From assembly GCA_965113315.1 (NCBI GenBank), contig OZ220369.1: a DNA stretch of 64,000 nt. One strand, written 5' to 3'. The position numbers and the translations under genes are program-made. The notes beneath the pieces are model-generated. The model was given only the letters and a program-made list of their open reading frames with translations. It searched no databases and was not told where the DNA came from. Position 1 is the stretch's first letter. Every line of letters begins with the position of its first letter. The DNA is from Podarcis vaucheri (lineage: Eukaryota). Positions 4,564 to 42,500 of the stretch are shown here, one piece after another.

Positions 4564-6363
4564 CTGGAAAAAAATGGCAACTTGTAAATGTGTTTTGGTC
4601 TTTCCTACAGTTCTTAAACTGCAGTTTTTCACATATCAGAAAATTTGTTTATCTGATTTCTTTTAGCTTTGTATATTCTGACTGTGTGTGGGGGTGTGTG
4701 TGTTAGATGTAAAATATGTTGCTGTCATCCACAAGTATGAGTCCTATTAATCTGCAACCCCTAAACCCCACTGTGGTAGAAAACAATAGTGCAAACTGGC
4801 ACTAAACTGAAAAAAATTAAAGAAATAACTCTCAAGAGACACAAGTTATAAGCAGCATTCAGAGGAGGATCTCTTAGGATAGAGAAAATATTTTTAGAAG
4901 AGCTTCCATGGTGCACTAACGTTTCTTTTTATGCACTGTTGCCTCTAATCAAACAGGTTTTTGTAACCATTCAAAACCTGCAGAACCAGTTTATCTAGAG
5001 GCAAAGATGGTTTGGATGAGAACAGCGGAGGACCTTGGGGTCTCAATATTTAATTTAGCACCTCCTCCGCACCATTTGAAATAATAGTTGCAGTGCCCCC
5101 TAGGCTCCGCACCGTGTGAACGAACTGGTCAAACTCCCCTAAATCTGCCTCTGATGAGCATTTAGAAAATGAGAAGCAATTCTTTCAGATCAGATTCCAT
5201 TCTCTTGAGTGTAAACACAAACTATCTAGCATTTTCTTTCTTTCTTTCTCTTTTTCTTTCTTTCTTTCTCTTTTTCTTTCTTTCTTTCTCTTTTTCTTTC
5301 TTTCTTTCTCTTTTTCTTTCTTTCAAAAAACGATTTATCTTTGTTTTCTTTTTAATACTGTACTTTTATTAGCTGCTTTGACTGGCTGCTTTGAGAGAGA
5401 AGAGTGTGTTATAAATAGTATTAAAAACATAAAAAGGGAGGCAGGCAATCTGCCCAACACATTGAGTGGGCTTAAGGAAGCACTGAATTTGCTGCTATAG
5501 GTTTAACAATATTAAATTCCCCAACCTGGTGCCAAGGGCAGAAAGCTGTAGAAGGCTCGTGGGATCTCCCTTGTTATGTAAGATCCCCTCACAACAAAAC
5601 AAAGCTACTGCTTCACCCTAGCCTGGTTTTGCTTCAGTGCACCTGAGTTGCAGAAAAATCCCTGAAGTGACCTCGTGCTACTCAGCAAGGTACTTTGGTT
5701 GCCCTGTCCCAAGGACCAGCACCCCAACCCCAACCCCCCGCACCACCACCGTCCCCGAAAGAAGCCTCTCCCCCACTCAGTCCCCCTCTGAGTCCTCCTC
5801 TTGAGGTCCCACCGCGGAGTACTTTCGCCTCTCCTTCGCGCGCTTATAGCGAGAAGTTTTCGCCAGGGCGGAGGGACAAGAGAAGAAGCCAGAAGAAAAA
5901 AGGGAGCCGTTCCGCATGGAACAAAAGTTCAGGGGAATTAGTTCTGTTTCACACATGCCTCCTACCCCACACTACCCTCCCGACCGGCCAGCCTTCCCTG
6001 GAAACGTCCGAATGCTCTAATGAAGTCGTGGACGGTGCCAGGCTATGAAAAGGAGCGCCCCTGAGCATGTGCAGAATATCCACACCCGGTGACCGAAGGG
6101 TCCCTTAACTCTGGAAGCAGCGAGGCTTGGAAGTAGGCTTGAGCTTGGCTGGGCCTAAGTAGCCGTGGTCGCCCGGCCGGGGAGGCTGCCCCATGGCGGC
6201 GCTGGGGTGGGGGGCGCTCCTTGGGGAGACCGAGCGAGGAGGCCCCTTCGCGCGCGCCCCCGGCCAGGCCTCTCGCTAGCTGGCGGTCAGTACCTGGCTG
6301 TAGCCCCCGCAGAGCCGGCTGCCGGCGAATCCAGGCCTCGCTCAGCGGCACCGCCACCGCCAT
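4436..6363 (-). CDS. LRRC36: LRRC36 (leucine-rich repeat containing 36), 5' part: coding exons 1-2; the rest lies left of the window
   Basis: Exon 1 (6294-6363) plus exon 2 (4436-4563) splice in frame via GT-AG to give MAVAVPLSEAWIRRQPALRGLQPEQVESISLQGTHAAKIVSLGDGLKAFKNLQSLDLSKNLLACLE. This matches the recalled human LRRC36 N-terminus and an LRR (LxxLxLSxN). Head-to-head with KCTD19, as in mammals. Confidence 0.9.
5233..5323 (+). repeat. (TTTC)n-type CT microsatellite
   Basis: Seen directly. Confidence 0.9.
6294..6363 (-). CDS. LRRC36: LRRC36 coding exon 1 (70 nt)
   Basis: ATG at 6363; MAVAVPLSEAWIRRQPALRGLQP; donor CAG|GTACTG, phase 1. Confidence 0.85.
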
Positions 6364-6541
6364 GGGGCCGCCGCGCGTTGCCTGGCAACCCCGGCAAACA
6401 CTGCGCGGCGGCGGCGGAAGGCCGCGAGCCAAGGAGGCCGTTGAGCGGCCGTCGCCGCCCGGCCTTTGCTTTGCCCTGCTGGGCGCTCTGCCCCGTCCCC
6501 TCAGGATGGTCCTCCGCCCCTCTCTCCGCCTGCCCAGCAAC

Positions 6542-6544
6542 ATG
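6542..6544 (+). CDS. KCTD19: KCTD19 exon 1 coding part (ATG only)
   Basis: AGCAACATG|GTAAAA; phase 0 joins exon 2 (EESE...). An in-frame upstream ATG exists at 6506. Confidence 0.75.
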
Positions 6545-9500
6545 GTAAAAGGGATCCCCTCAGGAGAGCAGGGCAGAGAGCGCGGAAACCCCAAATGGGC
6601 CCCCTGCGCGGGGCTGGAACCGGGGGCGGGGGAGGTCTCCCTCTACACACGCCCCCCCCCCCCACGGAGTGCGCTCTCCGCCCTTTTTTCAGCGCCAGGA
6701 AAGAGCGTCTCTGAGCATGTGCAGTTGGAGAGCATGCATCCTTTCTTGCCCCGATCTCGACAGCATCCTCGGATCCGAAGCATTATCGGAGAGGCTTCTT
6801 TTTAATATAGATTTAAAAAGAGCGGGTGGGGGAGGGGAATTCACTTGCGTGGTTATTTTAAAGGCTTAGGATCTGCTCTGAGCTTGTACTGATTTCTCCC
6901 CCACCTTTCAATTAGGAAGAATCAGAAATAGTTTCTGAAGCGGAATCTTCTGAGGAAGAGCTGATTCACCTGAATGTCGGAGGCTGGTGCTTCTCAGTTC
7001 CCAAAAGCAAAATTGCCCAGTTTCCAGACTCTCTGATCTGGAAAGAGGTTTCGGCTTTGACTCAGAACGAAAACGTGCGCCTGTTCATTGACAGAGATGG
7101 TTACACCTTCAGGCATGTCCACTATTACCTGCACACCTCCAAGCTGTCCTTCTCCAGCTGTGCTGAACTGAATTTGCTGTACGAGCAGGCCATGCTTTTG
7201 CAGCTGACCCCACTATTGCAGGTACTGCCTTTCCTGGCTGTGGTTGAGAACATGCTCTATTAAGATGTAAGCTGTCAAAAGGCTGATAAGTTAGAGCCCA
7301 GTTTAATGGGACAACTTTCACAACAGTAGTTTCTTCTCTGGCTGCCCTGGAACTGTCCTTTTTGGACTGTGGAACACTTTATAGGGATGGTTGTGCAGCT
7401 CCGTCTGGCTGGGAAAGCAACTGCCTGTGTCAGTTGTACAAAAACCTTGGCAGAATTAGAAGCCAAAGCAGGGAACAGCTCAAGTTAGGCTTAACCATGG
7501 GTTTAGAATGTGGGAGCTCCATGAGAACTCACGTACTCCCAGCTTCATCTTACAACTGGGTTCTTTCCCACTACCTGTTTTTTGCCAGCCATAAGCTGCT
7601 GTGGCTTCTGGACTGGCAAACTCTATTTTCTTCACATTAATGATTTGAATCCCAGTGTGAGTTTGTACACCCTGGTTTTGTGGCTAACTGGGTTTGCCAA
7701 TTTTCATGTCTGGGTAGAGTGTGATGAATGACAAGCAGAATACAAAAGAAGGAATCTGCATGCAAGAGGAGAGAGGCCTCCCTCATGCCAAGCCATGGTT
7801 CAGTGTTACATCTGAGTTATGTATTCAAGCTGGCAATCAAAGCACTGAGGCAGATGGAGCAAAGGCAATTAGATTGAGGAGCCTGAGGTCCAGGGAAACA
7901 GAAGCCCAAGAGAACAGTAAACTGGGAGTTCTTCTCTTGTCTAGGCAGAAGCCAAAGCAGAAGCTATTTATACCTGGCTTGGCCCATCTGGAGGCCTCTT
8001 TATGCCTGCTTCACTAATGGGACTGTTGTGGGATCACCCTCCCCACTTTCCTGCTGACTCTGAAGAGGACCCTGCAAGTCCTAAGCGTACTATGGAGTAT
8101 GAGCCCTCCCCATCCTGAGTTTTCCACTTCTAGCTCTACATCCTCTATGCATGAGATAAGTTCCATTTCATTCAAGCAGATAGACTGGGCAGGAAAAGTT
8201 CTCAGTGGATTGTGCCTCCTGTGTCAGTGTTTTAAACCAAACCTAGGTGATGAGGATTTACAAGACCCACCTCAGTCTTCAGCTGCTTGCCTGTCTCACT
8301 TTCAGGCAATGAAACGGAAGGCACCAAGACCAAAGGTTGGCATTGTTCTCAGATGAGGCCATAGGCGCCGACTCCATGGGGCTTGAGGGGGCTTGAGCCC
8401 CCTCAAAAAAATTTTTTGGGGGGCTCAGCCCCCCCAATAATCTCGGGCGCCCTTGCCGCCGTCCCCCGCCTCCTCCCCACCTGCTCTCTCCCCAGCCAGC
8501 CAGCCAGCCGCGCGCCCTAGCCGGAGAGCCCCGGCCGTCCCCCGCAAGAACAGGGGAATCCCCGGGGGCGGGGGCTTCTGCCTCTAGCCCCAGGTTTCCC
8601 GCATATCAGCTGTTCCGGAGCTGATTAATAGGCAGCAGCACGCTCTCCCCTATTCGCTCACGAGGGGGCGGCGCCACTTTATTTGCATATTCATGAGCTT
8701 ATTTGCATATTCATGAGCTTATTTACATTTCACGAGCTTTCCCGGGCCCCCCCAATATTTTTTATAAGTCCGCGTCCCTGGATGAGGCATCACGGAGAAC
8801 ATAGAGAGGGAAGGATGCCTATCAACAAGTGTGGGTGGGACCTGTCACATAGACATGTGGGTGCAAGCTGGTTGATGAAGAGCTTCAGGGCTACTTAAAG
8901 CTGTTTTTTTCCTACAAGGCACAATGAATTGGACAGCAACACTGATTCATCACCTTCTTAAATTACTCAGTACCCTCATTAAGGACTCATTCAGACTGCC
9001 TTTGTGCTGTGTTTCTAGGCACAGGTCTGGACTTTAAAGTTGCATGTCTGAGCACTGTTGTTTTTTGTTCTGGCACTTTCCCCAGGAAAACCCACGTTTT
9101 ACCACTGAATTGGAACAAACAGTAATCAGGTTTTCCACATACTGTATTGCCATTTGCTCCAATTCAGTGGTAAAATGCGAGTGTTCCCAGATAAAGCACT
9201 GGGACTAAAATAAACTGTTCTGACACAGTGTTTTAAAGTGTGGACCTGTGCCTGGAGTGCACAGTGCAAAAGGAAGTCTGGATGAGCCTTATGACAGGTT
9301 ATAATGGGTCAGCCATGAACTGTCTGAGTTGACAGTAATTTACACTTCTGAGTAGGATATAGGTTATCTTTGCTAGGTTTCACAGGTCTGACTTGCCCTT
9401 TATTAAAAACATCTATGGCAGATTCCTCCTAGGCTTCTCCTGAAGACAGAAAAATAAGTTGGTTCCACTGCCTACCTTGCTGAGCTGATAACCTGTAATG

Positions 9501-23900: not shown

Positions 23901-26900
23901 GTTGAGTTCAAGAAAAAAAATGGTTATATTGTGAAGGCCTTTTCTATTGTATTTCAGTGGGGTAATGGTGCTTCTTGAACATCAAATAATGCTACAAGTA
24001 GAGACTAGCTCTGAGCTGTATAGAGTTGTGTCCAATAATACAATTTGGTGAGACTATTCAGTGTATCTGGGATTTTCTTCTTGGGCAGTTTGGTTAGTGA
24101 ATGTCATGGAACTTGCATCTTGCTTAAGTCCCATGAGAGTGACCTGCTCTGCTAGGCCCCATATGCTGCTGCAGTTGCTCTCTTCTAGATGCCCACATGG
24201 TTGGATTGTTGGCATCAGTCAGCAGTGTGGGTTGCTGAGTAAAACAGCTTTGTCTTCAGGCAGATTATGCTAGATTAATGGTCTTCAACCAGTGGGTCAG
24301 GAGCCACGACTGGGCTGCGGTTTGATTTAAGGAGGGACACAACAGCAGCAGCACCATGCAAAGATTTGTCTAAAATATGAGAAATGGCTCCCTAAATGCA
24401 TATTTTGGTTAAAAATGAAAGTAACATAGAAATATGCTTTATAGTAGGGGAAATTGCTTTGCAAAAATATTAGGGGGAAATGTATGCATTGGGAGAAATT
24501 CACACTACAATGCTGTTGAATTTTTATTTTTTTATTTTTTTACAAACAGATAAGGAAATATAGAGAACCGAATTTAAAACTGAAAAACTGAGAGAAATAA
24601 AAATTGACAGGATCCCCTCTTCCTCACAATTCCAACTTGCCTTGGGTAGTTTTGCAGTGGCACTAGAATACTTGTGGATTGTGCTGTGACTAGCTGGATC
24701 TGTGGTGAACCAAGGATGTGACTCCTTGGCCACACTGAGTTACAGGGCCAGGCAGAAACCATGGAAGGTGGTGCCACCAAGTCAGAAACAAATTGCCCCA
24801 AAGCCAAACAAAGATCCAGTCTAGGCGGTGCCATTTTTGTAAAGAGGGTGATTGAGGGAGACACTGAAGGTCTGGCAAAGAAATGGGTGTTGATGGCACT
24901 CCCTAATTCTTTCCGCTTATAGATATTGTCTTTCTGAGCTTTCCATTGTCACAAGAGGAGATTTTTTATGCCCGAAAGTGCCACTGCTTTCTCACCGATG
25001 TCATCTTGGATTCCATAAGGCAGAAGGACCCCAAGAAAATGACTGCCAAAGTCGAGCTGCTTGTGCAGAGGCTGTGGGTAAGAAGACAACATGGCTGCTC
25101 TTGGGTTTATAGAGGCATTGGGTGCCAATCCCGAAACCATGTGGCCTATTGGCACAAGCTCTGCTCGCCTAGGGCATATCACCTGCTGAGACCTCCTTCC
25201 TGGTCTAACAGCTTGACTGTGAGCTCTGGGAATATTTGGAGACCACCAAAAGGCAATAAGCTTTGCCCTGCCCTCATCTCTCCCTTCTTCTAAGGCTTCT
25301 GCAGAAGAGAGTGGAATCCTGCAGCCATTCCTGCCTGCCTGGTCCTGGTCCTTCACCTCCCTTCCTCCCTCACAACCCTGCTAACTGCTCTTCTACACAG
25401 TTGGCTTTGGAAAATGGTTGTTGTGTGTCATTTCTTGCAGAGCCTAGAGATCACAGCTAAGGAGTTTGTGGCTGACTTGCTGAATGTGGCACCCTTTAAA
25501 GCAGATAGTCATGCTTGTGAGAAGTTACTGAAATGGATTGAAGTAAGTACGAACTATTGATTTGCTTCCTTTTGTAGTGGAGGACAGGGACTGCTGCTGA
25601 CCCAGAAAGACCAGGCTCTTGCTGCTTGCTTTGTGACTTCCTCCATTTGATTGAACAGAAGGGCTGGGGGGGGGGAGAGCCTCAGAACCCACAGTGTCAG
25701 CTTGGATAACAGGTTAATGTTTGAGCAGAGCTGAGTGAAATTTGCAGGCATAGGAGCTCATTCTGAGGATATGAACTCTGCCAAATTGGTTCAGGATTTC
25801 ACTTTTACGGAGTGCTTACTTTATACTATGAGTGTTCTTTAAAAGACAGCATCAACAAATATCTGTCACTTTTATTTCTTAGAAGAATTAGATGAAATTT
25901 GAAAGTCTAAATGTCAGGTAAATGGGTGCAGGGTTTTTTATTTTGGCAAGGGGAATGTTCGATAGATTTATTGCTTTATTGTTTGGCGCCCAGCCACGCT
26001 TTCCCTGCGGGCCTCTGTAGCTTCTGTTTACGCAGTGTGGCTTTGGAGCGGCCGTAAAGCAATTAGCAGAATTACACAGCGTCTGTGTGTCGAAAGGGCA
26101 GTAAGTAAGTCCAGACGTTTCTTCTATCCTAATATCTCTTTATTGGAAACAAAATAGCATATTTACAGTCCACAACAGCCATCAGTCTGTAGCTGCATTT
26201 TCTCTGCCTCCTCTCTCTCTCTTTGCAGCGGCTGAACTGAATGCTTTCGATTTCCACTCAGTTCACAGCATACCAAGCTGTTTACTTCACGTCCTGGCTT
26301 ACTTCCCTTGTAAGCCGGTCCCCTCAAGCACGAGGCATAGAAGGTTAACCCTTCACTACACCCAACAGGGAACATGTAAAGTTTCCTTTTTTAAAGGATC
26401 CCTTTACCCTATGGGGCCCTCATTCCTCCTCTTCAAACCCCAGTGCCTTGCTTACCTGGTTTTGGGAAGGTGGCATGAGGGCTGGTATGTGTGTGTGTCA
26501 AATGTTGCTGAGGGCCACCAAAAAAAGCCTCAAGGACTGCGTGCTGGACCACCGTGTGCTAGCTAGAGGAACAGGTGGAGAAGGTGGCCAGTAAGCCGGT
26601 TGTTCTGCTGGACCATCCACATCTAGGAGTGTCCACCAGTGGCGTAGCGTGGGGGGTGCCAGGGGTGCCGGCCGCACCGGGCGCAACATCTGGGGGGGGC
26701 GCGAGTCCAGAGGGCCCAGCCGCGTCGTGCCCTCGGCCCGCCCCTATTGTCAGAGGCTCAGCGTGGAAGTGTTAACAAAGTTTCAGAAGGGGGAGCGAGT
26801 GGGGAGGGACGCGGGGAGGGGAGGGGGTCCCCGCTTCTCTGGCAGCCTTGCAGAAGTGGCCACCGCCCGGCGGCTCTGCCTTTGCTCGCAGGCCTGCCTG

Positions 26901-29900
26901 GGGGCTCCCTCGGCTCCAGCGATCTGGGGCCTTGAATGAGGGGGGTGGGGGGAAGGCTAAGGCTGCTGGTGCTGCTGGGCCGGCCTTCTGCTCTCCTCTT
27001 CTCCCCCACCCACCCCCATTTGCAACTCTTAGACGCGCAAACTGTTGGCTTTAAGAAAACCTCGCCCCCCTCACCCCCTCCCCTCTTTCCAAATGGGGAG
27101 CGGAAATGTGGAGCGCGCAAGGCCGCTGCTGCGCTTGGAAGAGCTTCTTCCCCACATTCCTAGCATGAGTATATAATCTTAAAAAAAAATATTGTGCGCG
27201 CGCGAGGTGAAAAGAGAGCTGCGTTTGCGGGAGGAGGAGGGGGGTGGGGAGCGAGGCGCGCAAAAAACATCGCCCCTTGCGCGCGCGCGGGCACGTTCCC
27301 GTTCGCTCGCCTCAGACGCATTCCAGGGCCCAGCCAGCAACCGCCAGTCCCTGGCGGGAGATGCCGGAGGGCAGGTGGCGGGGGAGCAAAGTAAGGGGGG
27401 TTCCCCCACACCCACCCACCCCGCCAAGGGCAAACGCCCTCGGTCCGCGGCGCAAAGACTCGCCAGCCTCCCTCCAATTCGGTGCCCTCGCTCGGCTCTC
27501 CCTCTGAGCGAGGGCGCGCAATCTCCCGGCTTGCTCAAAGCCTTGGCGTGTTAACACGAGACGCCGAACTTTGGACGTGTAAACGGAAAGGCCCCCTGTG
27601 TTCCCGTTCCCCACGGCGCGCTTGGGACAGAGGTCGAGGCCTGGAGGCCCGCCTCGGGAACGCGCGCGCCTGCACCTTGGGGGTCATTTATTTCGCTTTC
27701 GCTTTGGGCTCTCGCGCCCCGAGTAAAGCATGTCAGTTTTTCTTAGCTTCTCTTCTACATCCTGTTTTTGTGTGTGTGTGTGCGCGCGCGCGAAAGGCAG
27801 CTTGGCGGGCTGAACGAGGGAGGGTTGTTTGGTTGGTTGGGCGGGCTTGTTTGGGTCTTGGTTTTTGCTCTACTCCGCTTCATGAGGGGCGATGTGGGGG
27901 GGCGACTTTGGCCCAGCAGGTCGTGGAAGGAGGGGGCGTATGAAAAGAGCTTAAACGGGTGCATTTCCAGGGAAAAACGCGTGGGGAACACACTCCTTTT
28001 TCACCCAAACCACCAGTTCCTGTTTCCTCGTGACGAGTTCTTAGAGGCCTGTTAATCTCATCGGGGAGGCGTACATATATGCATGTGTGTGTATGTACAA
28101 CTGAGTTTAACGTATCACACTAGAGGATAGTAGAGGTTAAAAGAGAATAACTTCCTGCTTGAGAGTTGCCCTGAATACATTTTCAACCATTTCTCTCGGA
28201 ACTGGCTCTACTGTACGCCAGGTTCTTGGCGTGTGGCTATTTGGCGGCCCCGATCCCGGGAGCAAAGAGGCGTCGCGGGAGCGGCTAGGCCTGCGCCAGG
28301 GCCCTAACCCGACAGCTTCTCCGGCTCCCCAAGCCGAGGACAGCCTCGGCTGTGAAGCTGCGCCTTCCGGGCTGGCCCCTTCTCGGCTGGGCCTCGCCTC
28401 TCCAGCTCCTGGTATGTGTGCTCCGCGGTGGTCCCCGCTCCTTCCAGACCCTTCCACCGCCCCCTGCCAAACTGGCTGTAGATACAAGAAGGGCAGCTGG
28501 GGTGGGCTATAGAGGACCCTGCCTCCCCCTGCGGGGCTCATCTCTGGCAATTGGCTCAAGGAGCCCCCTGAGTTTTGGCATTGTCTCTCCGCGCGCGCCC
28601 CCACCTCGCCTCTCTCCAGGAGCTTTATGGAGCTGCCTGGATCGGGTCTGCTTTGGAGGAGGGGAGCCTTCCTTGACCAGCATGTGGGGCACCCTTTGCG
28701 GCCTTTCCCTCTGGAGAGATAGTCACGCTCCCTCTAGTGCAGTTCCTAATCGCCAGTCGCCCTTCTGTGGCGTGGATTCTTCCGAGCCGGGTTCTTCCGG
28801 GGCCCTCCGGCTGCTTCTCTTTCGGGCGGCGGCGACCCTCCAGCTAAATACCCCTCGGGGGTTTGTGGCAGCCTCGCTTATTGTTCTCGGGACTCTGGTT
28901 TTACCTCGCCGCGCAATTAAGCACAATTGCAGCGCCTTCACCAGCAGTGGCGTAGCGTGGGGGGTGCAGGGGGGCCGGCCGCAACATCTGGGGGTTAGGG
29001 GGCGCAAATCCATGGGTTGGGCGCAAATCCACGGGTTAGGGGGCGCAAATTACTTGCCTTGCCCCGGGTGCTGACAACCTACACTACGCCACTGGTGTCC
29101 ACTCTCTTGTCCACTAACCAGTGTTCCTGGGGAGATGCTGTGGAGGGCAGACATTGGTTCAGGAAGTGGGGACAGATACCATCTCCCTGTTAGTTGTGAT
29201 CCTCAAGCTGTTCTTGGAGCTACAGGGCCCTTGAATGCTGCCAAAGCCACCCACAAAGAGCAGAGAAACGGCTTGAGATCTGTTTCTTCTGTGACCCTCC
29301 CAAAAGCACTTGCGATTGGAAGTAAAAAATAGCTCCAGTAAAAGCATTTCCCAATTCAAAACAGAACTGCATATCGACTCCTCTCCCTCACCCCTCCACC
29401 CTCTCTAGCATTTCCCATTTTTGCAGACGTTGAGGTACAAAATGTATCAGATTAGTTGGATGGGAAATAAAAACACCCTTCCAAGGCTTTGAGGTGGTTC
29501 TGATGCTTGGGGGACCAGTTTGCTTTGCCACAGATTGTTTTGGAATAACTTTTGATTCTCAGGGAGTCTGAATACCTCTGAAGCAAAGGGAATCACCTTG
29601 GATTTGTGCCTCATTGAAGATGTTTGCGCACAATTACTAAATTGCATTCAACCTTTTCATGCCCGAGTCCATCTTTAATCCTGACCTGCAGTGGAGGGAG
29701 TAACTTCTAAATTTTAAGCATGTGTCTCTTGAGGAGTTTGGGTGGCCTTCTATCTGGACACACACACTTCAGCCAGTGATGCTTTGGGATCTCAAATTTC
29801 AGTGGCACCCTGTGTGACACTAAAAATTGCTGACCCCCCACCTCTCACGCTCTGTTCTACAGCATTGTTGTGGCGCCCCCTGCAGCATGGCTGAATCAGT

Positions 29901-30144
29901 TGCACTACCCTGAAAGCGCCTCTGCTTCAGCTCTGAGTGTTTGGCAGCTGGTTCAACAACAAAGCCCTGAAAGGGGAATGTCATTGCCACTCCTTGAGCT
30001 GTTGCTAGCCTATTTGTTTTTCCCTTTCAGTTTACTCTGCCATTTGCCTGGAAGTACAGTTGCTGCATTGACCTGCTGATAAAAAAAGGTTACTTTCAAT
30101 CACTCTCTCATTTTGCCATAGGAAAATATTTACAGAAACCTTAA
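6542..30144 (+). CDS. KCTD19: KCTD19 (BTB/POZ domain protein, meiotic prophase regulator), complete 16-exon CDS, 2766 nt / 921 aa
   Basis: join(6542-6544,6916-7221,10175-10325,13094-13285,13725-13856,14028-14250,14817-14977,16633-16730,17974-18116,18890-18973,20006-20111,20727-21327,23505-23699,24923-25077,25441-25542,30031-30144). All introns are GT-AG and phases are consistent. Motifs [43 protein letters not shown] and FTLPFAWKY match recalled human KCTD19. Confidence 0.95.
6916..7221 (+). CDS. KCTD19: KCTD19 exon 2 (BTB domain 1)
   Basis: [44 protein letters not shown]...LLQLTPLLQ; flanked by AG and GT. Confidence 0.95.
8360..8780. mobile_element. Non-autonomous hAT element (421 bp)
   Basis: Perfect 8-bp TSD GATGAGGC at 8352-8359 and 8781-8788; imperfect terminal inverted repeats (TIRs) CATAGGCGCCGACT / AGTCCGCGTCCCTG; CpG-rich interior. 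Confidence 0.85.
8983..9288. mobile_element. Foldback MITE (PIF/Harbinger-like), copy 1
   Basis: Long imperfect inverted repeat GGACTCATTCAGAC...GTCTGGATGAGCC flanked by TAA/TTA; shares the GGAAAACCCAC...AATTGGAACAAA core with the copies at 44113 and 51569. Confidence 0.65.
10175..10325 (+). CDS. KCTD19: KCTD19 exon 3
   Basis: [50 protein letters not shown]. Confidence 0.95.
11916..11948 (+). repeat. (TA)n microsatellite
   Basis: Seen directly. Confidence 0.9.
12086..12344. mobile_element. Tc1/mariner (pogo/Tigger-like) MITE
   Basis: TIRs CCGTATTTTTCGCTCTATAAGAC / GTCTTATAGAGCAAAAAATACGG with TA on both sides. Confidence 0.85.
13094..13285 (+). CDS. KCTD19: KCTD19 exon 4
   Basis: [29 protein letters not shown]...[10 protein letters not shown]; donor GTAAGC. 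Confidence 0.95.
13725..13856 (+). CDS. KCTD19: KCTD19 exon 5
   Basis: [43 protein letters not shown]. Confidence 0.93.
14028..14250 (+). CDS. KCTD19: KCTD19 exon 6
   Basis: ...[40 protein letters not shown]. Confidence 0.93.
14817..14977 (+). CDS. KCTD19: KCTD19 exon 7
   Basis: [53 protein letters not shown]. Confidence 0.93.
15640..15820. mobile_element. hAT MITE (181 bp)
   Basis: TIRs CACTGGCGGAG / CTCCGCCACTG; 8-bp TSD TCTGTAAG / TCTGCAAG (1 mismatch). Confidence 0.8.
16633..16730 (+). CDS. KCTD19: KCTD19 exon 8
   Basis: [32 protein letters not shown]. Confidence 0.92.
17974..18116 (+). CDS. KCTD19: KCTD19 exon 9
   Basis: [47 protein letters not shown]. Confidence 0.95.
18890..18973 (+). 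CDS. KCTD19: KCTD19 exon 10
   Basis: [27 protein letters not shown]. Confidence 0.92.
19440..19790 (-). mobile_element. CR1 LINE ORF2 fragment
   Basis: Reverse-strand similarity to CR1 3' ORF2 (GCAGTATTCCAA...TCCTAGCATGGAAT...TTTTCACAGCTG); related to the copies at 22570-23350 and 50200-50475. Confidence 0.6.
20006..20111 (+). CDS. KCTD19: KCTD19 exon 11
   Basis: [35 protein letters not shown]; donor GTAAGG gives phase 0, matching the next exon. Confidence 0.85.
20140..20420. mobile_element. CR1-related 3' end repeat
   Basis: AAGAACATAAGAAGAGCCTGCTGGATC...CCATCTAGTC motif, which recurs at about 51045-51150 and 62995-63070. Confidence 0.6.
20727..21327 (+). CDS. KCTD19: KCTD19 exon 12 (large, low conservation)
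   Basis: Strong polypyrimidine acceptor; open frame containing the conserved [15 protein letters not shown] motif; donor GTGAGT. Confidence 0.9.
22570..23350 (+). mobile_element. CR1 LINE reverse-transcriptase fragment (degenerate)
   Basis: Decayed RT-like segments (GCCAAGTTTGCTGGTGGTACCAAA, resembling KFADDTK; TGGGCAATAAAATGGCAAATGAAATT, resembling WAxKWQMKF). Confidence 0.7.
23505..23699 (+). CDS. KCTD19: KCTD19 exon 13
   Basis: ...[34 protein letters not shown]... Confidence 0.9.
24923..25077 (+). CDS. KCTD19: KCTD19 exon 14
   Basis: [51 protein letters not shown]. Confidence 0.95.
25441..25542 (+). CDS. KCTD19: KCTD19 exon 15
   Basis: [34 protein letters not shown]; donor GTAAGT. Confidence 0.93.
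25956..26367 (-). mobile_element. Solo LTR (412 bp) in KCTD19 intron 15
   Basis: Termini TGTT...AACA; 5-bp TSD GGGAA at 25951-25955 and 26368-26372; minus-strand AATAAA at 26139-26144. Confidence 0.75.
26637..29094. mobile_element. Composite non-autonomous hAT element carrying about 2.2 kb of CpG-island-like cargo (Pack-hAT candidate)
   Basis: Left TIR CAGTGGCGTAG at 26637; right TIR CTACGCCACTG ending at 29094; perfect 8-bp TSD GTGTCCAC at 26629-26636 and 29095-29102; second left end at 28945; no transposase ORF. Confidence 0.85.
30031..30144 (+). CDS. KCTD19: KCTD19 exon 16 (terminal coding exon)
   Basis: [37 protein letters not shown]; stop TAA at 30142-30144. Confidence 0.93.
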   Translation, partial: FTLPFAWKYSCCIDLLIKKGYFQSLSHFAIGKYLQKP

Positions 30145-30148
30145 TAAA
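30143..30148 (+). terminator. Candidate KCTD19 polyadenylation signal overlapping the stop codon
   Basis: CCT-TAATAAAAC contains AATAAA at 30143-30148; T-rich sequence follows. Confidence 0.55.
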
Positions 30149-31229
30149 ACTGAAATCCTTTGTTTCCTCCATCCAGATAAATCGGCTGCTCCCTTCATGT
30201 GTATCTATTTAACTGGCAACAGGAGCCATGTAGAAACTTAGTGGGGGTATTAAAGTGGCACACAGGGAGAAGTGCTAAATTCTCTGCCCACAGAGCAGGG
30301 GCCTTCATTTGCCTGCGCTGCTGTCTGAAGTGATACAGTTCTGAATTCTGCTACCTTAGTGAATTGCTCTGTGTAATGTGTGAAAGAGGACCAAGAGACA
30401 GCATGTAAGTTCTCCCCTCCTACTTGCAGCAGGATGTAGGGCAGACAGCATCCCTCCAGCAAGCCCCCAAGTCCCATATTTCCTCAAAAAGGGGCAGCTT
30501 GCTCTCTTGCCTGGGTGAGCCTGCTGCAAAGAGGCCACCTGCACCCCTCTGGCTTCTCCTGCTTCATGGGAGCCTTCCAAGGCACAGGTAGGGCCTCATG
30601 GTGGAGTCTCTTTCAACATCCCTGCTCTGGCCTGTCCCCTTGATGGTCTTACAGGGCAGAGCTGCAGCACACTTGGCCTGATGTCACAACTGGCCACCTG
30701 TTTGGGTGTCTTTCTAGCTGGACTGATTACGACACATACACACTTTTCACACAAGGGCTTTACTCTGGAATTTCCCTTTCACTTTTATAGGCAATACACA
30801 TGGTATTGTAATGAATTTGCTGGCTTGCTGTGTTCAGTGTCTATATTTATTTCATTAATGGATCACTCCTGAAATGAATGAACAATAAGAACACCACCCA
30901 TAAATACCTATATAAGAAAGAAGTTCAGGTCCAATGCCTATGCAGACTGGGATAAAAATGTTCTCTTGAAAGGCTTGTTGGAAAAGGAAGGGAAAGGAAC
31001 TTACTCGGAAGTAAGTTCAGCTGACTGTAATGGGACTTACTCCCAGTGTGTACGGAAGGGTTGCAGCTGAAGCTTCTTCTCAGAGTGGATAGGTGTGCCT
31101 TTTCTTCTCTCTCTTCCCCACACCCCTGCACATCAGTCCAACCCAAGCCACCCACTGGCAGAAATCCTGGCTCCTGCTGCATAAGCTACTTCCATAGATG
31201 GTTTTGTAACGGTATTAGAGAATCAACTG

Positions 31230-33508: not shown

Positions 33509-36500
33509 CTGCAACACAGCATCATCCATGATCAGGGGACTCTGGGAGATTTGAACATAGATCCATGGTGAAAGGAAGGACTGGCTCTCCCCCCCCCCCC
33601 GCCCCCAAATCCTGCTTGGTGTGGGCCAGAGGAGCAGCATGTGCCACAAGCACCTGCAAACCAAGGATCCTGCCCACCCCACCCTGCCAGTCTCTAGCCC
33701 AGGAGCTGGATCCACCTCCCATCAACTCCAGCCAAGAATGATGAGAACTGATAGTTCAGCCGCATCCCAAGGGCCTCCTGTATTCCACTAAGGAAAACTC
33801 CCAGTCTCCCAACCCCAACTGCTGATTTCTAAAGTGGGGCCTCACACACTTTGTTTTGCAGAAATGGCTCAAGTTGGCTTCCCATGGTCTGTTGGAAGGA
33901 TAGAGTGTCAAGGCCACAGACAGGGCTGAGGTTCCCTGGGCAAGGCAGGGAGGACTAGTGATTCTATGGCCTGGATCCCTTGGGCACATTGGCAAGGTCC
34001 TGTCCACTTACCGCTGAAACGTACTGGCTTTTGGGGAAACAGGTTTTCTGCTCTGTGGGGGAGGGAAAAGCAGAGCCTTCGGGGATGGGGAGGGGTGAGC
34101 CAAGGTCTTCACAGAAGCTCTCCTGCGGAGCGCTGGATACGCAGCCACTGTCGGAGCCACTGGAGCCGCTCCTGGACATGCATTGGGAGGAGGATTCTGA
34201 GCTCTCAGTCGCTGGGGACAAAAAGAAATTCAGCCATTAGACAAAAGAGTCCATCAGGGGTAGAAGTATATCCCAGCCAGATGTGTAAGAAACTGCAGCC
34301 CAAAGAACCCACTCAGCTTCTGGGGAGCAGATACAGCAATGCTCTAAACACTTCCAACCTTTCCACGTTCTAGTTTAGGCCACACTCTGACTGTCCATCC
34401 CATGCTCAATGACTAGCTTATGATCTATACCAGGCTCTCCTTTTGGACTGCTTGCCCCCATTTCTAAGGTTTATAGTGCCCTCCCTTTCTTCTCAGTGTC
34501 CTTAGGAACCACAGCAGTTGGAACTGGGGAACCATCACAAAACAGCAAGTAAGTGCACAGGGGGAGGATAGCTTGCAAGAGGGCCAGAAAGTAAAGTTGC
34601 TCATAGCATGAGTGAACGATGCAGCCATGGACTGAAAGTGAGAGTCTAGAATCTCTCTCTCTCCCCCCATCCCCCATTCTGCCAAGCCAAGCAGCCATCT
34701 GCAACACACAATGGTTTTAGAAACTCCCAGAGAGCAAGGATGGCTTCTGAACAGGGCTGAGAGAACTGAGGGCTCGTACGTACTCATGGAAGGCTGGCTG
34801 CTGGTCTCGTTCTCCATCTCATCCTCCTCTATGCATGTGCCCGCATCCAAGGAGTGGCTGGTTGAGAGCATGCTGGGCAGCAGAGACTGGTTCAGGTACA
34901 TGTGCAAGTTGAGAGGCCCAAGCACTGTGCAGGAGGAGGATGGGCTGCCAGCAGGCAGTGGCGTTTGCGACCTCTTGTAAGGGTTGGCGTGGTCAAACAG
35001 AGAGACGGCAATAGAAGCCCGAGTCCTGGCTCCTGCCACAGAGCAAAAAAGGGGAGAAGCAAGTCATGAAGAGCTGGATAGCAGCTGCGTGGGTCCTTGA
35101 GGGGGGCTGGGGTGTGAGAGGGTGAGGTAGACTTACCCCTGCCTTTCATAATGTAATCAATGGCACGGTCATGGATGGCAGCTTCACTCGGCTTGATGTC
35201 CAGAAAAGGCTTGTTCCCCACACCCATGGACACCATCTCCTGCATGCGGATCTCTGGGGGTGACAACAACCATGAGGAACATGCCTAGCCTCACCAAAAA
35301 GCAGCTCTGTGAGTTCTCAGGGCCACCAAACCTAGCCTCAGTTTCTGGCAAGACAAGCAGATTTCTGGTAGAAGGGGCAACTTAGATCAAACTTGGTCCA
35401 CCAGGTGACATAGCTTGGCTGCCTCTGGAGTAGCAGCTCTGGGCACAAGGAGTCCTAAAGGACAAAGCAACCACCAGACCAAGAAGCTTGTCCCAGGCAG
35501 TTGTCAATGCTCTAGTTAATCTCTCCCAAGAAAGTAATCTTGCTGGCATCTCCCAGGTATTACATGTTAGCCAGCGGAAAAACAACTGCTGGTAGTATTG
35601 GGGAGGGTCACCTGGTGCAGTGAAGTCCTGGGCTCCTGGGCCTTGCCTAGCTGGCACTTGCAGCTCTCCTCCCTTTTGCATATACCACGACAAACTGCCC
35701 CCCCTCTCTCGGACACAGGACAGAGCACCTCTATTTCGTGTGACCAGTCACTCTAGTGGGAGTGGGGGCTTCCATGGAGAATCCCAGGAACCAATGACCT
35801 ACTTTATGTCTGCAACTGTCATGCCCGGAGAAGAACCTGGAGGCCCTATCCAACAAGCCTTCTATGCTGCCCCCTGCTTCCATGAGCCACTAATTCTGGC
35901 AGAAAGGATTCAATGGTCCCACAGGGAAGAGGGTGCCTGGGCTTTACTGACGCCAACCTTTATTGCGGGCAGCCTGCTCCCACAGGATCTTGGTAATGTC
36001 ACTGGTCCAGGCCAGCTTGGTCTCGGGGCTACTGGCCTGCAGGACGTAGGTGTCACTCGATTTCCGCCTTCTAAACCAGATCTCAAAGCGCAGCCCACTC
36101 TCGCCGGAGTTCTCAGTCAGGCCAATGTCTGCTGTCTGCAGGGACAGAGCAAGTGAGTCAGCAAGCCAGGAGGCAATTGGGGTCACATGCTGGGCTGAGG
36201 GTATACATGGTGAGGCAGAGGCGGCTCCTGAGCTGCTGCCATGATGATCCACCTCAATGGTGTGGTGTGATTTAGTGCTTACAAATGGGAAAGAGGTTCA
36301 CTCTGAAAAGTTCAGCCTTGGTAAGCTTGACAGGGAAGGTGACGTAAGATGCGCTTGGGAACATGAAGGTGTGAAAGCCCTGCCCTCCAACTCACACAGC
36401 CCACAAGCCGCACGTGGGCTCCAGAAAAACCCTAGTGCCACTGCCTACTGGCTAACTGAGCATCTGGTTGCAATGCATGCACACACCTTGATGTATCAAA

Positions 36501-39500
36501 AATCGTGCAGGTCTGCCTGAGGCAGCTGATAAAACTGGCTGCCTGAATGTGTGACATCGTGCTTCCCCCAAGTTTTCTCTTGCACAGCCTGTGAAGAAGG
36601 CATCCCCCTCCCTATCTGGTGCCATTTTAGTTTCTTGGAGAGGCAGCAGCACTCGCAAGCAGCAGTGGGCAGCTTTACCTTAAAGGAGCACTTGTAGATG
36701 TAGACATCCAGCCCCCCCTCAACCCGCTTGGGCTTGCTGAAAAGGATCAGGTCTTCAAAGAGAAAGACATGGCGCTGGCACTTCCTGCGGCCCAGACAGA
36801 CGCTGAACTCATCCTGGCGCACCAGCTGCCCCTGCTCCTTGAGGTTCACCTGGGCACAGAAACCATTCATTCATTTGCAAAAAGGTCTGGACTGGCAACA
36901 TTCTGCGGGGTGGGGAATGATGTCAGTTGTACATGGGAGTAGAGGACTGCGGGCCACGGGGACAAGCAGCAGGTGCCCTGTCGCCAAGGGCAGCCTGACA
37001 AGCCTCTGATGCCAGAGTCCCTCTGGCTCCATCCCAGAGCAGTCGGTTTCTAGCCTGCCTTGCACTCCAGGATGTGAGGCTGCTGCACCGAGATCCCTTT
37101 TCATGGGATCAAGGAGATGCAGAGGCAGCCAGGAGCTCAGCTGGTGCTGTTCCTGGAAGGAATCCCCTCCCCTCCCCTGCCCCTCCTCCTCCCAGCCCAC
37201 TCACATCACAGTCCCGGATGGCATCCATGGCCAGGAGGTCGTTGCCGTGACGCAGCTGGAAGCGCACCATCTCCTCGGCGGCTTGCAGGTAGGCCAGCTC
37301 CTGCTCCTGAGCCTCCCCACACTCCTTGATCAGGTCCTTCAGGAGGAGGGCGTACTTGCTCATGCGCTGGATGGGCTTCAGCAGGTAGGAGGCCAGGTCC
37401 ATCTTGTCCCCCAGCTGCATCTGCTTGAGCTGGAGGCCAGAGCGGGAGAGCGGAGCTGAGTGGCTGGAGCCAGAGAAAGACTCTAGTCCAACGCCTGGAA
37501 GGGGTTGCTGGGAGGGGGCAGGACTTACCCTGAAAAAAGAGTTCCCACGGCTGGCCAGGAGCGAGTCAGACTTGGGCTTGTTTTTGCTGTAGAGAGCATA
37601 CATCCCAAACTGATCTTTCTGCAAAAAGGGTTAGAAGCACACAGGCCCCCCACAAAGGGAGGCCACAGACTCTGTCAAGGGATTGGCCACAAGCACACAG
37701 GCACAAAATACAGAGCTTGGGCCTCAAGGAGAGTAGAGCGCTGCCACTACAAAAGCCTGCAGACCTTCATGCTTCCAAAGGTAATGGCAGGCCCAGGCTA
37801 GGCCATGTCCAGAGAAGATAGTGGAGGCCCCATCCTGGAGGCCTTCAGCTTGTGCTCCTGCTGACTCTCCTTTATCCTGTTCCCCTTTGCAAAATCTTCT
37901 CAGCAGGCCTTGTTCGTCTGCCTGACCACCTCTCCCTCCCGCTCCTGCAATGGTCCTTGGGCCTAGAGCCAGAAACACTGGTGTTGTGGACGGGCATTTC
38001 AAGGGCATTTCCCCTCGGGAGCCCTAATCCTTACCCTGAGGCCTGCCTGCCCACCTACCAAAGTTCCCTGCAACCAGCCCCTCCCCAGCCCTGCCCGAGT
38101 TTCTCCAGGCCCCTTACATGTCTCAGGAAGCAGTGGCTGACCCGCAGCGGGTGGTTACAGCAGTTCTCCAGTTCCCGCAGGAAGTACTGGCTATGGAAGT
38201 CATAGAGCTTCTCCAGGTTCCCAAAAATGACACTCCGCTTCCCCCGCAGGTCTTGGGGCAGGTCCAGCCGCTCCATCTCAGGGAAGTAGCTCTCAATGAT
38301 GTAGCGCAAGGACCGGACGTACTCCTGCTCAGTCATCACCATCTCCTCAATGATGTGCCGCAGTTTGCTGCAAGAGAAGAAGCCAGGAGCAAAATTGGAG
38401 GATGGTGAGAAGAGGCCTTGATTCTTCAAGGTCTGTGGGGCCAGAGGGAGAGCCTACCAGCTTGCTTGGAAAAACAAGCTCTTCCCCAACAGCTGCAGAT
38501 AAAAACACAACCCTGAAGCATTTTTAATCTGCAACTGCCCAAAAAGACGTCTCTCCAACCTCACCAGTTTCTTCTTGCCTTTTTGAACAGTGCTCCATGC
38601 TTAAGCTGCCAACTGTTCTGCCAGCTGACTCCCCCTGCTGGTCCATTCTCCCTCTCCAAAATTAAATAACAGGGAACATCTACACTACAAACATATGCTG
38701 GTGCTACTCCACTTTAACTGTCCAGCTGTAGATTGTTGACAAGCTGAGAACACCCACCTCCCTGAATGAGGAGTCCCAAAGGGACTGGCTGTTAAGCAGG
38801 CTTCTGACTGGATCTGCCCACAGCCCCACTTGGATGGCTGTTAGCAGGTGATACTCCGACCTCATCCATACCTACCTGCCCAAGCTCTTTGCCTCTGGTA
38901 TGGAGAGGCTGCTCCTCTGCTCCGCTTGCAAGCCGCCAGGTGCCCAATTGGTTGGGCCGAGGTGTTGCCGGGCCACATGCTCAGTACTGCTCACTTCCAG
39001 CCCCTTGATGAAGACGCCGGTGTTGCCATAACGGGCTGGCTCACTCAGAGTCCGCTGGCAGCCAGAGTGCAGTCCCTCTGTGCAGGGCAGGTCAAAACTC
39101 TGGGCCTTCCTCAGGGGCCTTTTGGGGAATGGCTGCTGGCTAGAGGCTGGGGTGGAGGGGCGGGAGGGTCCAGCCTCCAGGACTTCCACAATGCTCTCCA
39201 GGGTGACCTTCTCCTTCTTAGAAGCCTCTGGAATGACCTGGCTTGGGAACACAACCTGCTCCCCAGTCCACCCAGGGAGACGGAAGGGGAGTGGCCCCTC
39301 CAAAGGCGGCCTGCCCTCCTGGCTGAGCTCTCCCTCAGGCGATGGCTTCAAGTCAGGAGGGCACAGAGAACTCTTGGTCCTCAGGGCAGCTTCCAGCTTC
39401 ATCTCAAAGCCCAGCATGGTCTCCTGGCACTTGGACCAGGCTAGCTGCCATTGCTTCAGGGCACGGCTGCTCTTCAGCTGGCATGCCAGCTCCTTCATCT

Positions 39501-42500
39501 CCTGGAATCTGGCACTACTGATTTCTGGGTGCTGTCTCTTGTAGCTCTCCAGGCTCCTGAGAGCCAAAGCACAATCCTCAAGGGAGCTGCCCTCCTCTGT
39601 GCTGATGCTGGAAAGGTGGCGCATGCCCTCCAATGCCCATTCGTAGGCCTGTAGGGGTGGGACAAGGAAAGAGCGATCAGTGGAGGGAGGGAGGGTGGGG
39701 TCCACAGCTAGGCCACAACAAGAGGCTCTCTATCTGAGGCTAGGCCCTGTTCACCATGTCACCAGCCTGACTGACTGCCAGGCACGGCTGCCAGGCTGCG
39801 ATGGAGGCAGCAGCAGCTTGGCTTGCTCAGGCCCTCCCCAGGAAAGGCGGCACTTGGAACTGTCTAGGGAAGGCGTCTTCTCCTTTGTCCACAGTCTGAA
39901 AACCACATCAAGCTTTTCCATGTGCCTTCCTCTGCCCTCCACCCTACCTTTTATCTCCTGCTCCATTTTCATCTTTTTCTCTAGAATCTTGTGTGTGCAA
40001 ACGTGTGTCAAGTATCACACGGACTGCTAGGACTGGGGCACTGGCTGACTCTACAGATAGCAAAGACACAAGACTGGAAAAGGCCCCCAAGCAGAGTGCA
40101 GGGGGTGCACTGGCCTGCTGCCTGTTGTGGGAAGGTCAATGTGGCAGGATCAGTCCCGACATGCCCCACACCCACCAATACTCTGCCCAACAATAGATTT
40201 GTGGGGAGTTGTTCCAGAGAGGTATCCCCCTCTCCTACCACCACCACCAAGAAAGCAGTATGTGTTGGTTGGTGTGTGTAGTCAGAGGATGCCACCAGAG
40301 GGCGCCTTGTGTGTGTGGAATCCTCCCAGGGGTCAGCAACCTTTTTCAGCCCTGGACTCCACCGTCCCTCAGACCATGTGGTGGGCTGGACTATATTTTT
40401 TTTTGGGGGGGGATGAATGGATTCCTATGCCCCACAAATAACCCAGAGATGCATTTTAAATAAAAGCACACATTCTACTCATGTAAAAACACCAGGCAAA
40501 CCCCACAAATAACCCAGAGATGCATTTTAAATAAAAGGACATATTCTACTCATGTAAAAACACGCTGATTCCCGGACTGTCCGCAGGCCGGATTTAGAAG
40601 GCAATTGGGCCGCATTCGGCCCACGGGCCTTAGGTTGCCTACCCATGCCTCATCCCCAAACTGAAAACAACTGTCCCCAGAGGGAATGTGGAGAGCTCTG
40701 GCAGATATGGAGTAGGGCTAAGCCAAAAGAGGGATGCAGCCTTAAGGAATAGCACAAGTGGGCAAGCTGTGAATGCAGAACATGACCCCCTGCACGCCGC
40801 AATTCAGACATAACTGCATTGGAACAAAGATCGCTAATGCAACCAACTCCAAAGCGAGAGCTAGTGCAGAACATTGCCTCACATCCCAATAAAAGTGACT
40901 GCCTTTTGCCAATTTCCAAGAAAGGCTTTTGAGGGGCTCATGGTGGTGAGAAATGCAGTAGCCTATGGCTGTTTCTTCTGCTTCAGTGCGGCCTCTCCCA
41001 CGTCCGTTCAGATGATTGGCTTCGTTGTTCCTCACCCCCTCTCCCAGGTCAGGCCTGGTTGGTTCTAGTCTGGACCAGATTCTGAATAAATGTAAGCAGG
41101 CCAAAGCCTGTCAGAAACAAAGTAAGGAGTGCTGAGCAGGGCTTAGGTCCCCATGAATGCCATCTTGGTTGCCAGACTGTAGTGGGTATTTTGGGCAGAT
41201 GGGAGTGCATTCTGTAGCATGTGTGGAGAGTCCACATATTATTCCACTTTATTAATTGTTCTGTAACGCTTTCCCAAAGGGACACGGGTGGCGTTGTGGG
41301 TTACACCACAGAGCCTAGGACTTGCCAATCAGAAGGTCAGCGGTTCGGATCCCCGCAACGGGGTGAGCTCCTGTTGTTTGGTCCCTGCTCCTGCCAACCT
41401 AGCAGTTCAAAAGCACGTCAAAGTGCAAGTAGATAAATAGGTACCACTCCGGTGGGAAGGTAAACGGCATTTCTGTGCACTGCTCTGGTTCACCAGAAGC
41501 GGCTTAGTCATGCTGGCCACATGTCCCGGAAGCTGTACGCCGGCTCCCTCGGCCAATAAAGCGAGATGAGTGCCGCAACCCCAGAGTCAGTCACGACTGG
41601 ACCTAATGGTCAGGGGTCCCTTTACCTTTACCTTTAACGATTTCCCAAGTGTTGCTTTGGTATTGTTGTTTAGAGGGCAGCACTGCAAAAGTAGATCAGG
41701 AATGTCCCCACCCAGAACAGTTGTGCCACAAAATTTCCACAGGAAGCTACAGGGCGTACTGAGCAGTCTGCCCAGCTCAAAACGTTTGTAGGAGCAAACA
41801 CCACTGAAAGTGTGCCCCCACCCTGAACACAATACAGCCCATAAATGTAGAGTTTAAAGGACACAGGGCGGGGGGGTCCATAATCTCCCAGCCAATGGCT
41901 GGCCTTTACAGCCTGAGCCAGCATCCCACACAAAAGACTAATAAAACAGAGCCTACAAGAGAAAGTGTCTTCATGAAAGAACTTTGCATATCCTTGGTAT
42001 GTCCAGTCCTGTGCTCACAATACTGGTCCCACTGCAGACATGCAGAGAACTCCAAGGCCAGCCCCCAAGGGGGGGGGGTTGTGGGCTGAAAAGAAGAGCA
42101 GATGCCAAGAGTCTGATGCCTGCCACTTTGAACAGAGCAGGCTGAGCAAGGGATGTGTTCAGGCTCCCTCATTAGACATGCATTTCCAGCTGGGCCTGGA
42201 AAATCATCTGCAAGCCCAGGCTGCATCGGCAACTCTGATGCTCCCCGTCTCTAGTTTCCGTGGCACAAAAGAGATAAGAATCACAGAGTTGTAAGGGATC
42301 TTGAGGGTCATCAAATCCAACCCACTGCAATGCAGTAATCACAGCTAAATAATTCCTGACAGATGGCCACCCAACCTCTGTTAAAAAAGCTCCAGTGAAG
42401 GAGAGTCGACTACCTTCCAAGGCAGCCTGTTTCTCTGTTGGACAGCTCTTACTGTTAGACCATTTTTCCTAATGTTTAGTTGGAAGGAGGAGGAGGAGGA

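Follow-up and report, generated by a model that had tools for sequence, protein, structure and literature searches.

Pack-type transposons copy and relocate pieces of genes and promoters. In a stretch of 64,000 nucleotides (nt) from the lizard Podarcis vaucheri (contig OZ220369.1 of assembly GCA_965113315.1; hereafter, the window), we analyzed a unit of 2,458 bp that has hAT-type ends, lies between two perfect GTGTCCAC 8-mers, and is very probably a lineage-specific Pack-hAT, in which an older composite carrier holds 1.3 kb of captured DNA. The unit probably sits in a KCTD gene, of which a KCTD-type BTB exon was found on the + strand at 6916-7260 (Pfam BTB_2, E 4e-9; best solved relatives KCTD15, KCTD1 and KCTD16). 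A CpG island at 5801-6900 lies directly upstream of this exon, and the two are probably the promoter and first coding exon of the host gene. Exons encoding RhoGEF (DH) and SOS1/NGEF-like PH domains occupy 36499-39729 on the - strand, convergent with the KCTD gene; as a pair, the two predicted genes are consistent with PLEKHG4 beside KCTD19, the tail-to-tail arrangement found in human.

The ends of the unit are those of a hAT transposon. The GTGTCCAC 8-mer has just three occurrences in the 64 kb, which is near chance expectation; two copies abutting both inverted ends are not expected by chance. The inverted ends start with CAG: CAGTGGCGTAG begins at 26637 and its reverse complement finishes at 29094, with 11 of 11 bases identical, or 15 of 18 when the comparison is extended. 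The 18-nt left-end motif was recovered at 26637, at 28945 and, inverted, at 29077-29094 (three matches with at most three mismatches, against none from shuffled sequences). The target-site consensus of hAT transposons is nTnnnnAn, and GTGTCCAC fits it, its second base being T and its seventh A. The unit thus combines an 8-bp duplication, an nTnnnnAn site and short CAG-starting inverted repeats, as found in non-autonomous hAT elements. Inside the unit, a second CAGTGGCGTAGCGTGGGG at 28945 opens a complete 150-bp miniature inverted-repeat transposable element (MITE), which contains approximately 2.8 tandem 19-nt units and is directly preceded by TTCACCAG. The latter likewise fits nTnnnnAn and, to judge from this match, may mark the place where the inner MITE originally inserted. 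The segment at 28945-29094 is short and non-coding, has inverted ends and is present in very high copy number, in keeping with a MITE.

Over 73-78 nt, the left fragment shares 77% identity with the left arm of the inner MITE and carries an additional 9-nt insertion, indicating that the two left ends come from different subfamilies. We considered whether the left end could be a duplicate of the inner MITE's own left end and rejected this, as the two are 77% alike and the 9-nt insertion is common to other families. Nor does the unit consist of two complete elements, since its left end is a 66-78-nt fragment of a different subfamily. The parts of the unit are listed in the table below.

Table. 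Anatomy of the 2,458-bp element and its target-site duplications (window coordinates).
Feature	Position	Strand	Remark
Left target-site duplication, GTGTCCAC	26629-26636		identical to 29095-29102
Left terminus: 11-bp inverted end and MITE-type subterminal region of the 9-nt-insertion subfamily	26637-26702	+	
R1, left internal part of the carrier family	26703-26921	+	
Cargo: 1,320 bp captured by duplication from a CpG-island-like single-copy locus	26922-28241	+	
R2, right internal part of the carrier family	28242-28944	+	ends in TTCACCAG (28937-28944)
Complete 150-bp hAT MITE	28945-29094	+	right end doubles as the right end of the whole element
Right target-site duplication, GTGTCCAC	29095-29102		perfect copy of the left one

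A search of public sequencing runs identified 20 runs from 8 studies that contain part of the window, and the contigs of four of them were aligned to 26000-29700: X1 (organism A), X3 (organism B), X5 (organism C) and X7 (organism E). In X3, X5 and X7, the contigs over 29095-29700 had depths of 102.1, 9.13 and 9.3, respectively, and each extended approximately 130 nt further to the left; identical depths, one contig each, recurred at 26557, 26567 and 26598 in pieces that end near 26629. In these contigs the two flanks meet directly across one GTGTCCAC, which is the empty site. The flanks in organisms B, C and E diverge from the window by approximately 1.3% (8/606). The right flank in X1 shows 0/636 differences and abuts the terminal 30 nt of the MITE. 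The empty site in B, C and E, together with the filled right junction in A, therefore indicates that the insertion is real and specific to the lineage of organism A. The left flank (26000-26620) is itself moderately repeated, at approximately 4-70 times the single-copy contig depth in all four runs, which places the insertion within or next to an older repeat; the 64-kb window contains no other copy of this flanking repeat. Further along the window, 61277-61476 is a run of 200 Ns, either an assembly gap or a masked stretch.

The interior of the element (26703-28944) is 61% GC and has a CpG observed/expected ratio of 0.74, against 0.22 and 0.12 in the two flanks, and the step in composition coincides with the element ends. 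At 27200-27800 the ratio rises to approximately 1.0 (0.96-1.17). By the criteria of Gardiner-Garden and Frommer (>200 bp, GC >50%, CpG observed/expected >0.6), 26703-28944 would be classed as a CpG island from its sequence. No open reading frame (ORF) for a transposase was found in the element or in the 64-kb window, and a Pfam search with the three longest ORFs of the element gave no matches, to either a transposase or a recognisable captured exon. Similarly, a protein search with the longest ORF of the cargo (27482-27940) returned no relatives, and this ORF is probably non-coding. Searches against Rfam, permissive for 25500-30500 and at the gathering threshold for the whole window, yielded nothing above threshold; the sub-threshold matches at 26932-27013 were set aside as weak, G-rich chance matches. 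A literature search on the end sequence of the element returned unrelated papers only.

We then compared the depth of the different parts of the interior. The region 26992-28231 is at single-copy depth in all four runs, and the contigs that cover 26922-28241, which are 0.8-2.9 kb long, are also at single-copy depth. Past 26922 these contigs continue into DNA unlike that of the window for 1,884 nt (X7) and 154 nt (X5), and past 28242 they do so for 1,643 nt (X3), 540 nt (X5) and 491 nt (X1). Single-copy contigs with unlike DNA on both sides indicate that 26922-28241 duplicates a single-copy locus elsewhere, the parental locus. An autonomous hAT interior could be ruled out, as the element lacks an ORF for a transposase and has single-copy host DNA in its middle. 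When self-BLAST was run part by part against the 64-kb window, no parental copy was detected, that is, none within 26-35 kb on either side. The element therefore has the structure by which Tan et al. 2021 (PMC8277862), whose criteria we adopted, recognise Pack-TIR elements (those bounded by terminal inverted repeats, TIRs) and Pack-hATs: repeat sequence (26637-26921 and 28242-29094) flanks a single-copy segment, and a parental copy of that segment exists elsewhere.

The sequence on both sides of the cargo belongs to the carrier. A joint that leads from 26921 to 28242 via CTGAGC was present in all four runs, in contigs at 7-27 times the single-copy depth; a 561-nt record of X5 (record 17), for instance, spans 26726-26921 and 28242-28601. 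In all four runs contigs cover 26726-26921, and the depth of R1 (26744-26867) is 25-50 times single-copy, while that of R2 is 10-34 times over 28232-28727 and 5-8 times over 28728-28851; the contigs over 28242-28602 are at 10-28 times. Furthermore, a contig of X3 at approximately 5.7 times single-copy depth covers 28640-28951, which takes in TTCACCAG and the opening 7 nt of the inner MITE; organism B lacks this insertion, yet it has the crossing from R2 into the MITE at 28944/28945. The joint, the depths and this crossing together indicate that 26703-26921, 28242-28944 and the doubled left end constitute a repeat family, which we term R. From contig depth, R would have roughly 5-50 copies; as reconstructed, it is approximately 1.14 kb long and consists of a 66-bp MITE-type left end, a CpG-rich interior of approximately 0.92 kb and a whole MITE as its right end. 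R predates the species split, as its depth is comparable across the four organisms, among them the three without this insertion. The copy in the window differs from the R consensus contigs by 1.6%, and self-BLAST found neither a second copy of R nor a further MITE in the 64-kb window.

These results allow the sequence-only reading of this DNA to be judged. The duplication, the inverted ends, the left-end fragment and the inner MITE all lie where it had placed them, and its GC- and CpG-rich interior without a transposase ORF was borne out (61% GC, no ORF resembling a transposase). Its placement of the unit in KCTD19 intron 15 agrees, indirectly, with the KCTD-type BTB exon and the RhoGEF-PH gene of the window. 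It had treated the interior as a uniform 2.24 kb, which proves to be single-copy sequence over 1,320 bp, with 219 bp of repeat to the left and 703 bp to the right. The idea that host DNA had been captured consequently stands for 26922-28241, which has a parental copy elsewhere, but not for the full 2.24 kb, since 0.92 kb is the multi-copy family R. The proposal that the DNA was captured from upstream of a resident MITE does not explain this cargo, which is embedded midway in the carrier, where it replaces 6 bp; such a capture could at most explain the origin of the carrier family. For that family, a foreign left end joined to DNA upstream of a resident MITE would fit both the anatomy of R and the match of TTCACCAG to the target consensus. 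The CpG-rich interior of R could be an older capture, or the remnant of the 5′ region of an autonomous element. Finally, a hAT-type insertion, rather than resident DNA, and an empty site in related lizards had been expected, and three relatives (X3, X5 and X7) do carry the site with one GTGTCCAC.

The borders of the cargo are precise. At the left junction, which is blunt, R ends at 26921 and the parental contigs start at 26922; at the right junction there is a 1-nt overlap, 28242 being common to both, and the CTGAGC of R is absent. Any microhomology at the breakpoints would be limited to the 1 nt on the right. The first 8 nt of the cargo, ATCTGGGG (26922-26929), are identical to an 8-mer of the left arm at 26686-26693. 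This may be due to chance, at a probability of about 3%, or a template switch at an intermediate stage may have left it behind. In the cargo and R2, several alternating (GC)n and (GT)n tracts occur at 27199-27207, 27280-27290, 27661-27669, 27766-27793 and 28590-28598, and contigs were interrupted at the tracts 27758-27798 and 28072-28097. Tracts of this kind can form non-B DNA and stall replication forks, and they may be relevant to template switching.

The cargo also differs from every version of the parental locus. At least six substitutions are private to the window copy (26937, 27566, 27600, 27918, 28063 and 28122), with every covering run agreeing on the other letter. In addition, approximately 85-90 nt at 27351 are present in all four parental versions and absent from the window copy; they were either deleted once the segment had been captured or passed over while it was copied. 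The missing stretch lies 10 nt upstream of the one weak candidate first exon that a script identified in the cargo, with an ATG at 27361 and, 31 nt on, AAG/GTAAGG; a search of the cargo for a POLR2H N-terminal motif did not find it. The window copy does not carry the variants seen solely in the X1 parental copy (27229, 28068 and 28069). Overall, the cargo is approximately 0.8-1.4% from the parental copies, and its private change is approximately 0.5%. On these differences, the captured copy is a true paralogue, distinct from all parental versions.

The inner MITE and the left end belong to a far larger population. Their summed contig depth was, as a rough estimate, of the order of 10^4 times single-copy in the four organisms. 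Approximately one quarter of the aligned X1 contigs, nearly all of them on the MITE parts, are at least 99% alike, and for this reason the hAT MITE family looks young or recently active. Many contigs link 26693-26702 directly to the MITE interior. Tens of contigs share the left end and diverge at 26703 and 26714 (CTCGCAC... and AAGGGACAAG..., respectively), indicating that this left terminus also serves two or more other non-autonomous families.

From these observations we infer the order of events (capture, then transposition) and the mechanism of repair. The starting element would have been a non-autonomous hAT of the mid-copy composite family R, one copy of which would have gained a 1,320-bp duplicate of the distant CpG-island locus in place of 6 bp (CTGAGC) in mid-R, the likely route being template switching in repair synthesis at a break or an excision gap. 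The loaded 2,458-bp element would then have been cut and pasted by a hAT transposase acting in trans, and it would have landed in a late intron of the KCTD gene, with an 8-bp GTGTCCAC duplication, in the lineage of organism A only. We favour capture followed by a jump because there is no parental copy in the window, the captured DNA is rich in CpG, the relatives have an empty site and the cargo appears to date from around the species split; nevertheless, we rate the chances of this order as about even. The private changes and the absent A-only variants suggest that the capture dates back to about the time of the species split or beyond it, and the fact that the relatives' site is empty although the capture is of about that age favours capture elsewhere and a later jump. 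Older copies of R, moreover, had far more time for loading than one new copy at this site, which points in the same direction. It is plausible that the outer ends moved as one unit.

A number of points weigh against this order of events. The contigs of the four runs revealed no further loaded copy bearing another duplication, and the depth of the cargo in organism A is approximately 1-1.9 times single-copy, which would allow for at most one loaded copy besides the parent. In X1, the sole run with a filled site, the contigs show parental letters alone at the private positions, and the share of the query's words found in this run is 0.65, below the expectation for an exact copy of the cargo. A hemizygous insertion would look like this, since contig building drops minority paths, as would absence of the cargo from that individual. 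Loading in place would be favoured if, as may thus be the case, the cargo is polymorphic, hemizygous or of very recent origin. In addition, the dating is weakened by variant patterns that are incongruent across the parental copies of the four organisms and suggestive of incomplete lineage sorting. The read evidence consists of assembled contigs rather than raw reads, in which depths are rough and minority variants may drop out, and the empty-site joint was deduced from matching contig depths and lengths.

The strongest competitor, which we consider possible although the less probable of the two, is that an unloaded R inserted at GTGTCCAC in lineage A and that a later break or abortive excision was repaired there by a 1.3-kb copy of the distant locus, such that the loaded unit never moved. 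This corresponds to what Tan et al. 2021 describe as gap filling, either transposition-independent or coupled to excision. Loading in place is the dominant route for single-copy animal Pack-TIRs, which are mostly old and were filled from DNA less than 5 kb away (PMC8277862). The breakpoints in the middle of our element resemble those of Tan et al. 2021 (PMC8277862), but gap filling prefers such nearby DNA strongly, and no parental copy lies within 26-35 kb. The filled right junction in organism A without private cargo letters is as it would be for a young or polymorphic cargo, and the cargo depth of less than twice single-copy in that organism is also compatible with it; however, the six or more substitutions and the 85-90-nt deletion oppose a very recent event, unless the repair synthesis was error-prone. 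Furthermore, insertion and loading would both have to fit on the short branch of lineage A.

We regard it as improbable that the long form is ancestral, in which case the 7-27 copies of R would be internal-deletion derivatives, CTGAGC would be filler and the window would hold the last full-length progenitor. The deletion end points match the cargo borders exactly, and deletion derivatives with short filler are typical of hATs such as Ac/Ds; but a deletion that removed exactly the captured segment would be an odd coincidence. R is older than the species split, at similar depth in the four organisms, and the distance of the cargo from its parent (0.8-1.4%, with approximately 0.5% private) is smaller than the 1.6% that separates this copy from the R consensus, and both points speak against an ancestral long form. 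An assembly artefact, in which the assembler or a chimeric read misplaced a 1.3-kb segment into R, is very unlikely. Although the run from the same organism has no contig with the private letters, and none of the contigs listed crosses the cargo junctions, exactly 6 bp of R are replaced, with clean junctions; the cargo differs from each parental version at six or more sites and by the deletion, so that no parental locus was mis-joined; and R and the parental flanks share no repeat able to mislead the assembler. Resident intronic DNA between two unrelated MITE insertions, a reading for which the two left ends speak and nothing more, is refuted for practical purposes by the empty sites, since in three relatives the flanks meet at one GTGTCCAC and the 2,458 bp are missing altogether, and by the CpG content, which steps exactly at the element ends.

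The value of this locus lies in its youth, with an empty site in sister species, a parental locus that is nearly identical and a carrier and MITE that were apparently active recently; the order of loading and jumping could therefore be settled here. The case also allows one to ask whether a transplanted CpG island stays unmethylated and whether it starts transcription inside the host intron. More speculatively, and we hold this to be rather doubtful, the lizard lineage may have a currently active hAT system that captures CpG-island or promoter DNA repeatedly and spreads it. R, at 7-27 copies, would then be an older Pack element that was amplified, and the window would show a second capture nested within it. 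If true, vertebrates would have an equivalent of the Pack-MULEs of rice, and with it a means by which promoters are still being carried into new genes.

Several known systems offer comparisons. In Ac/Ds and P-element derivatives, an internal segment is replaced by foreign filler that is copied in during repair after excision or breakage. By analogy, the internal segment of the lizard element would likewise have been replaced by foreign sequence; the filler of those derivatives measures tens to hundreds of bp and is often nearby or self-derived, whereas that of the lizard is 1.3 kb and comes from a distant single-copy locus. In composite transposition, as in the macrotransposons of Ac/Ds and in bacterial composites, the outer ends of two elements cooperate and move the DNA between them. 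Such a process may account for the origin of the R carrier (the left end, the sequence up to TTCACCAG, and the MITE). Unlike in composite transposons, however, the left partner in the lizard is a 66-bp end, and the 1.3-kb cargo in the middle of the carrier would be left unexplained.

Plant Pack-MULEs, which are summarised in Tan et al. 2021 (PMC8277862), resemble the lizard element in that a TIR vehicle carries GC-rich 5′ gene fragments whose parental copies are unlinked, as in rice and other plants, and in that template switching has been proposed as the route of capture. Unlike the lizard hAT, they are Mutator elements with a 9-bp duplication and long inverted repeats; they number in the thousands, one third of them multicopy.

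Among animals, Tan et al. 2021 (PMC8277862) catalogued 370 Pack-TIRs in 100 genomes, 208 of them on hAT elements, and lizards are absent from the main text of that study. Four multicopy, and hence transposed, vertebrate cases with distal cargo were reported there, from frog and alligator, and multicopy Pack-TIRs tend toward GC-rich captured DNA (PMC8277862). The element described here is closely matched by Pack-hAT-N8_XT of Xenopus tropicalis (PMC8277862), which is also a non-autonomous hAT with an 8-bp duplication and a duplicate of host DNA whose parental copy lies elsewhere. In both, the cargo is GC-rich and of the type of sequence found in the 5′ regions of genes, the orthologous site of the outgroup lacks transposon and cargo alike, and the breakpoints are internal with apparently little or no microhomology. 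The lizard cargo is longer, at 1,320 bp vs 291 bp, and the lizard element, unlike its frog counterpart, is known from one loaded copy so far and has a carrier that is itself composite, with a doubled left end. Pack-hATs are thus a kind already catalogued in animals (PMC8277862), of which the lizard element is a new example and not a new mechanism.

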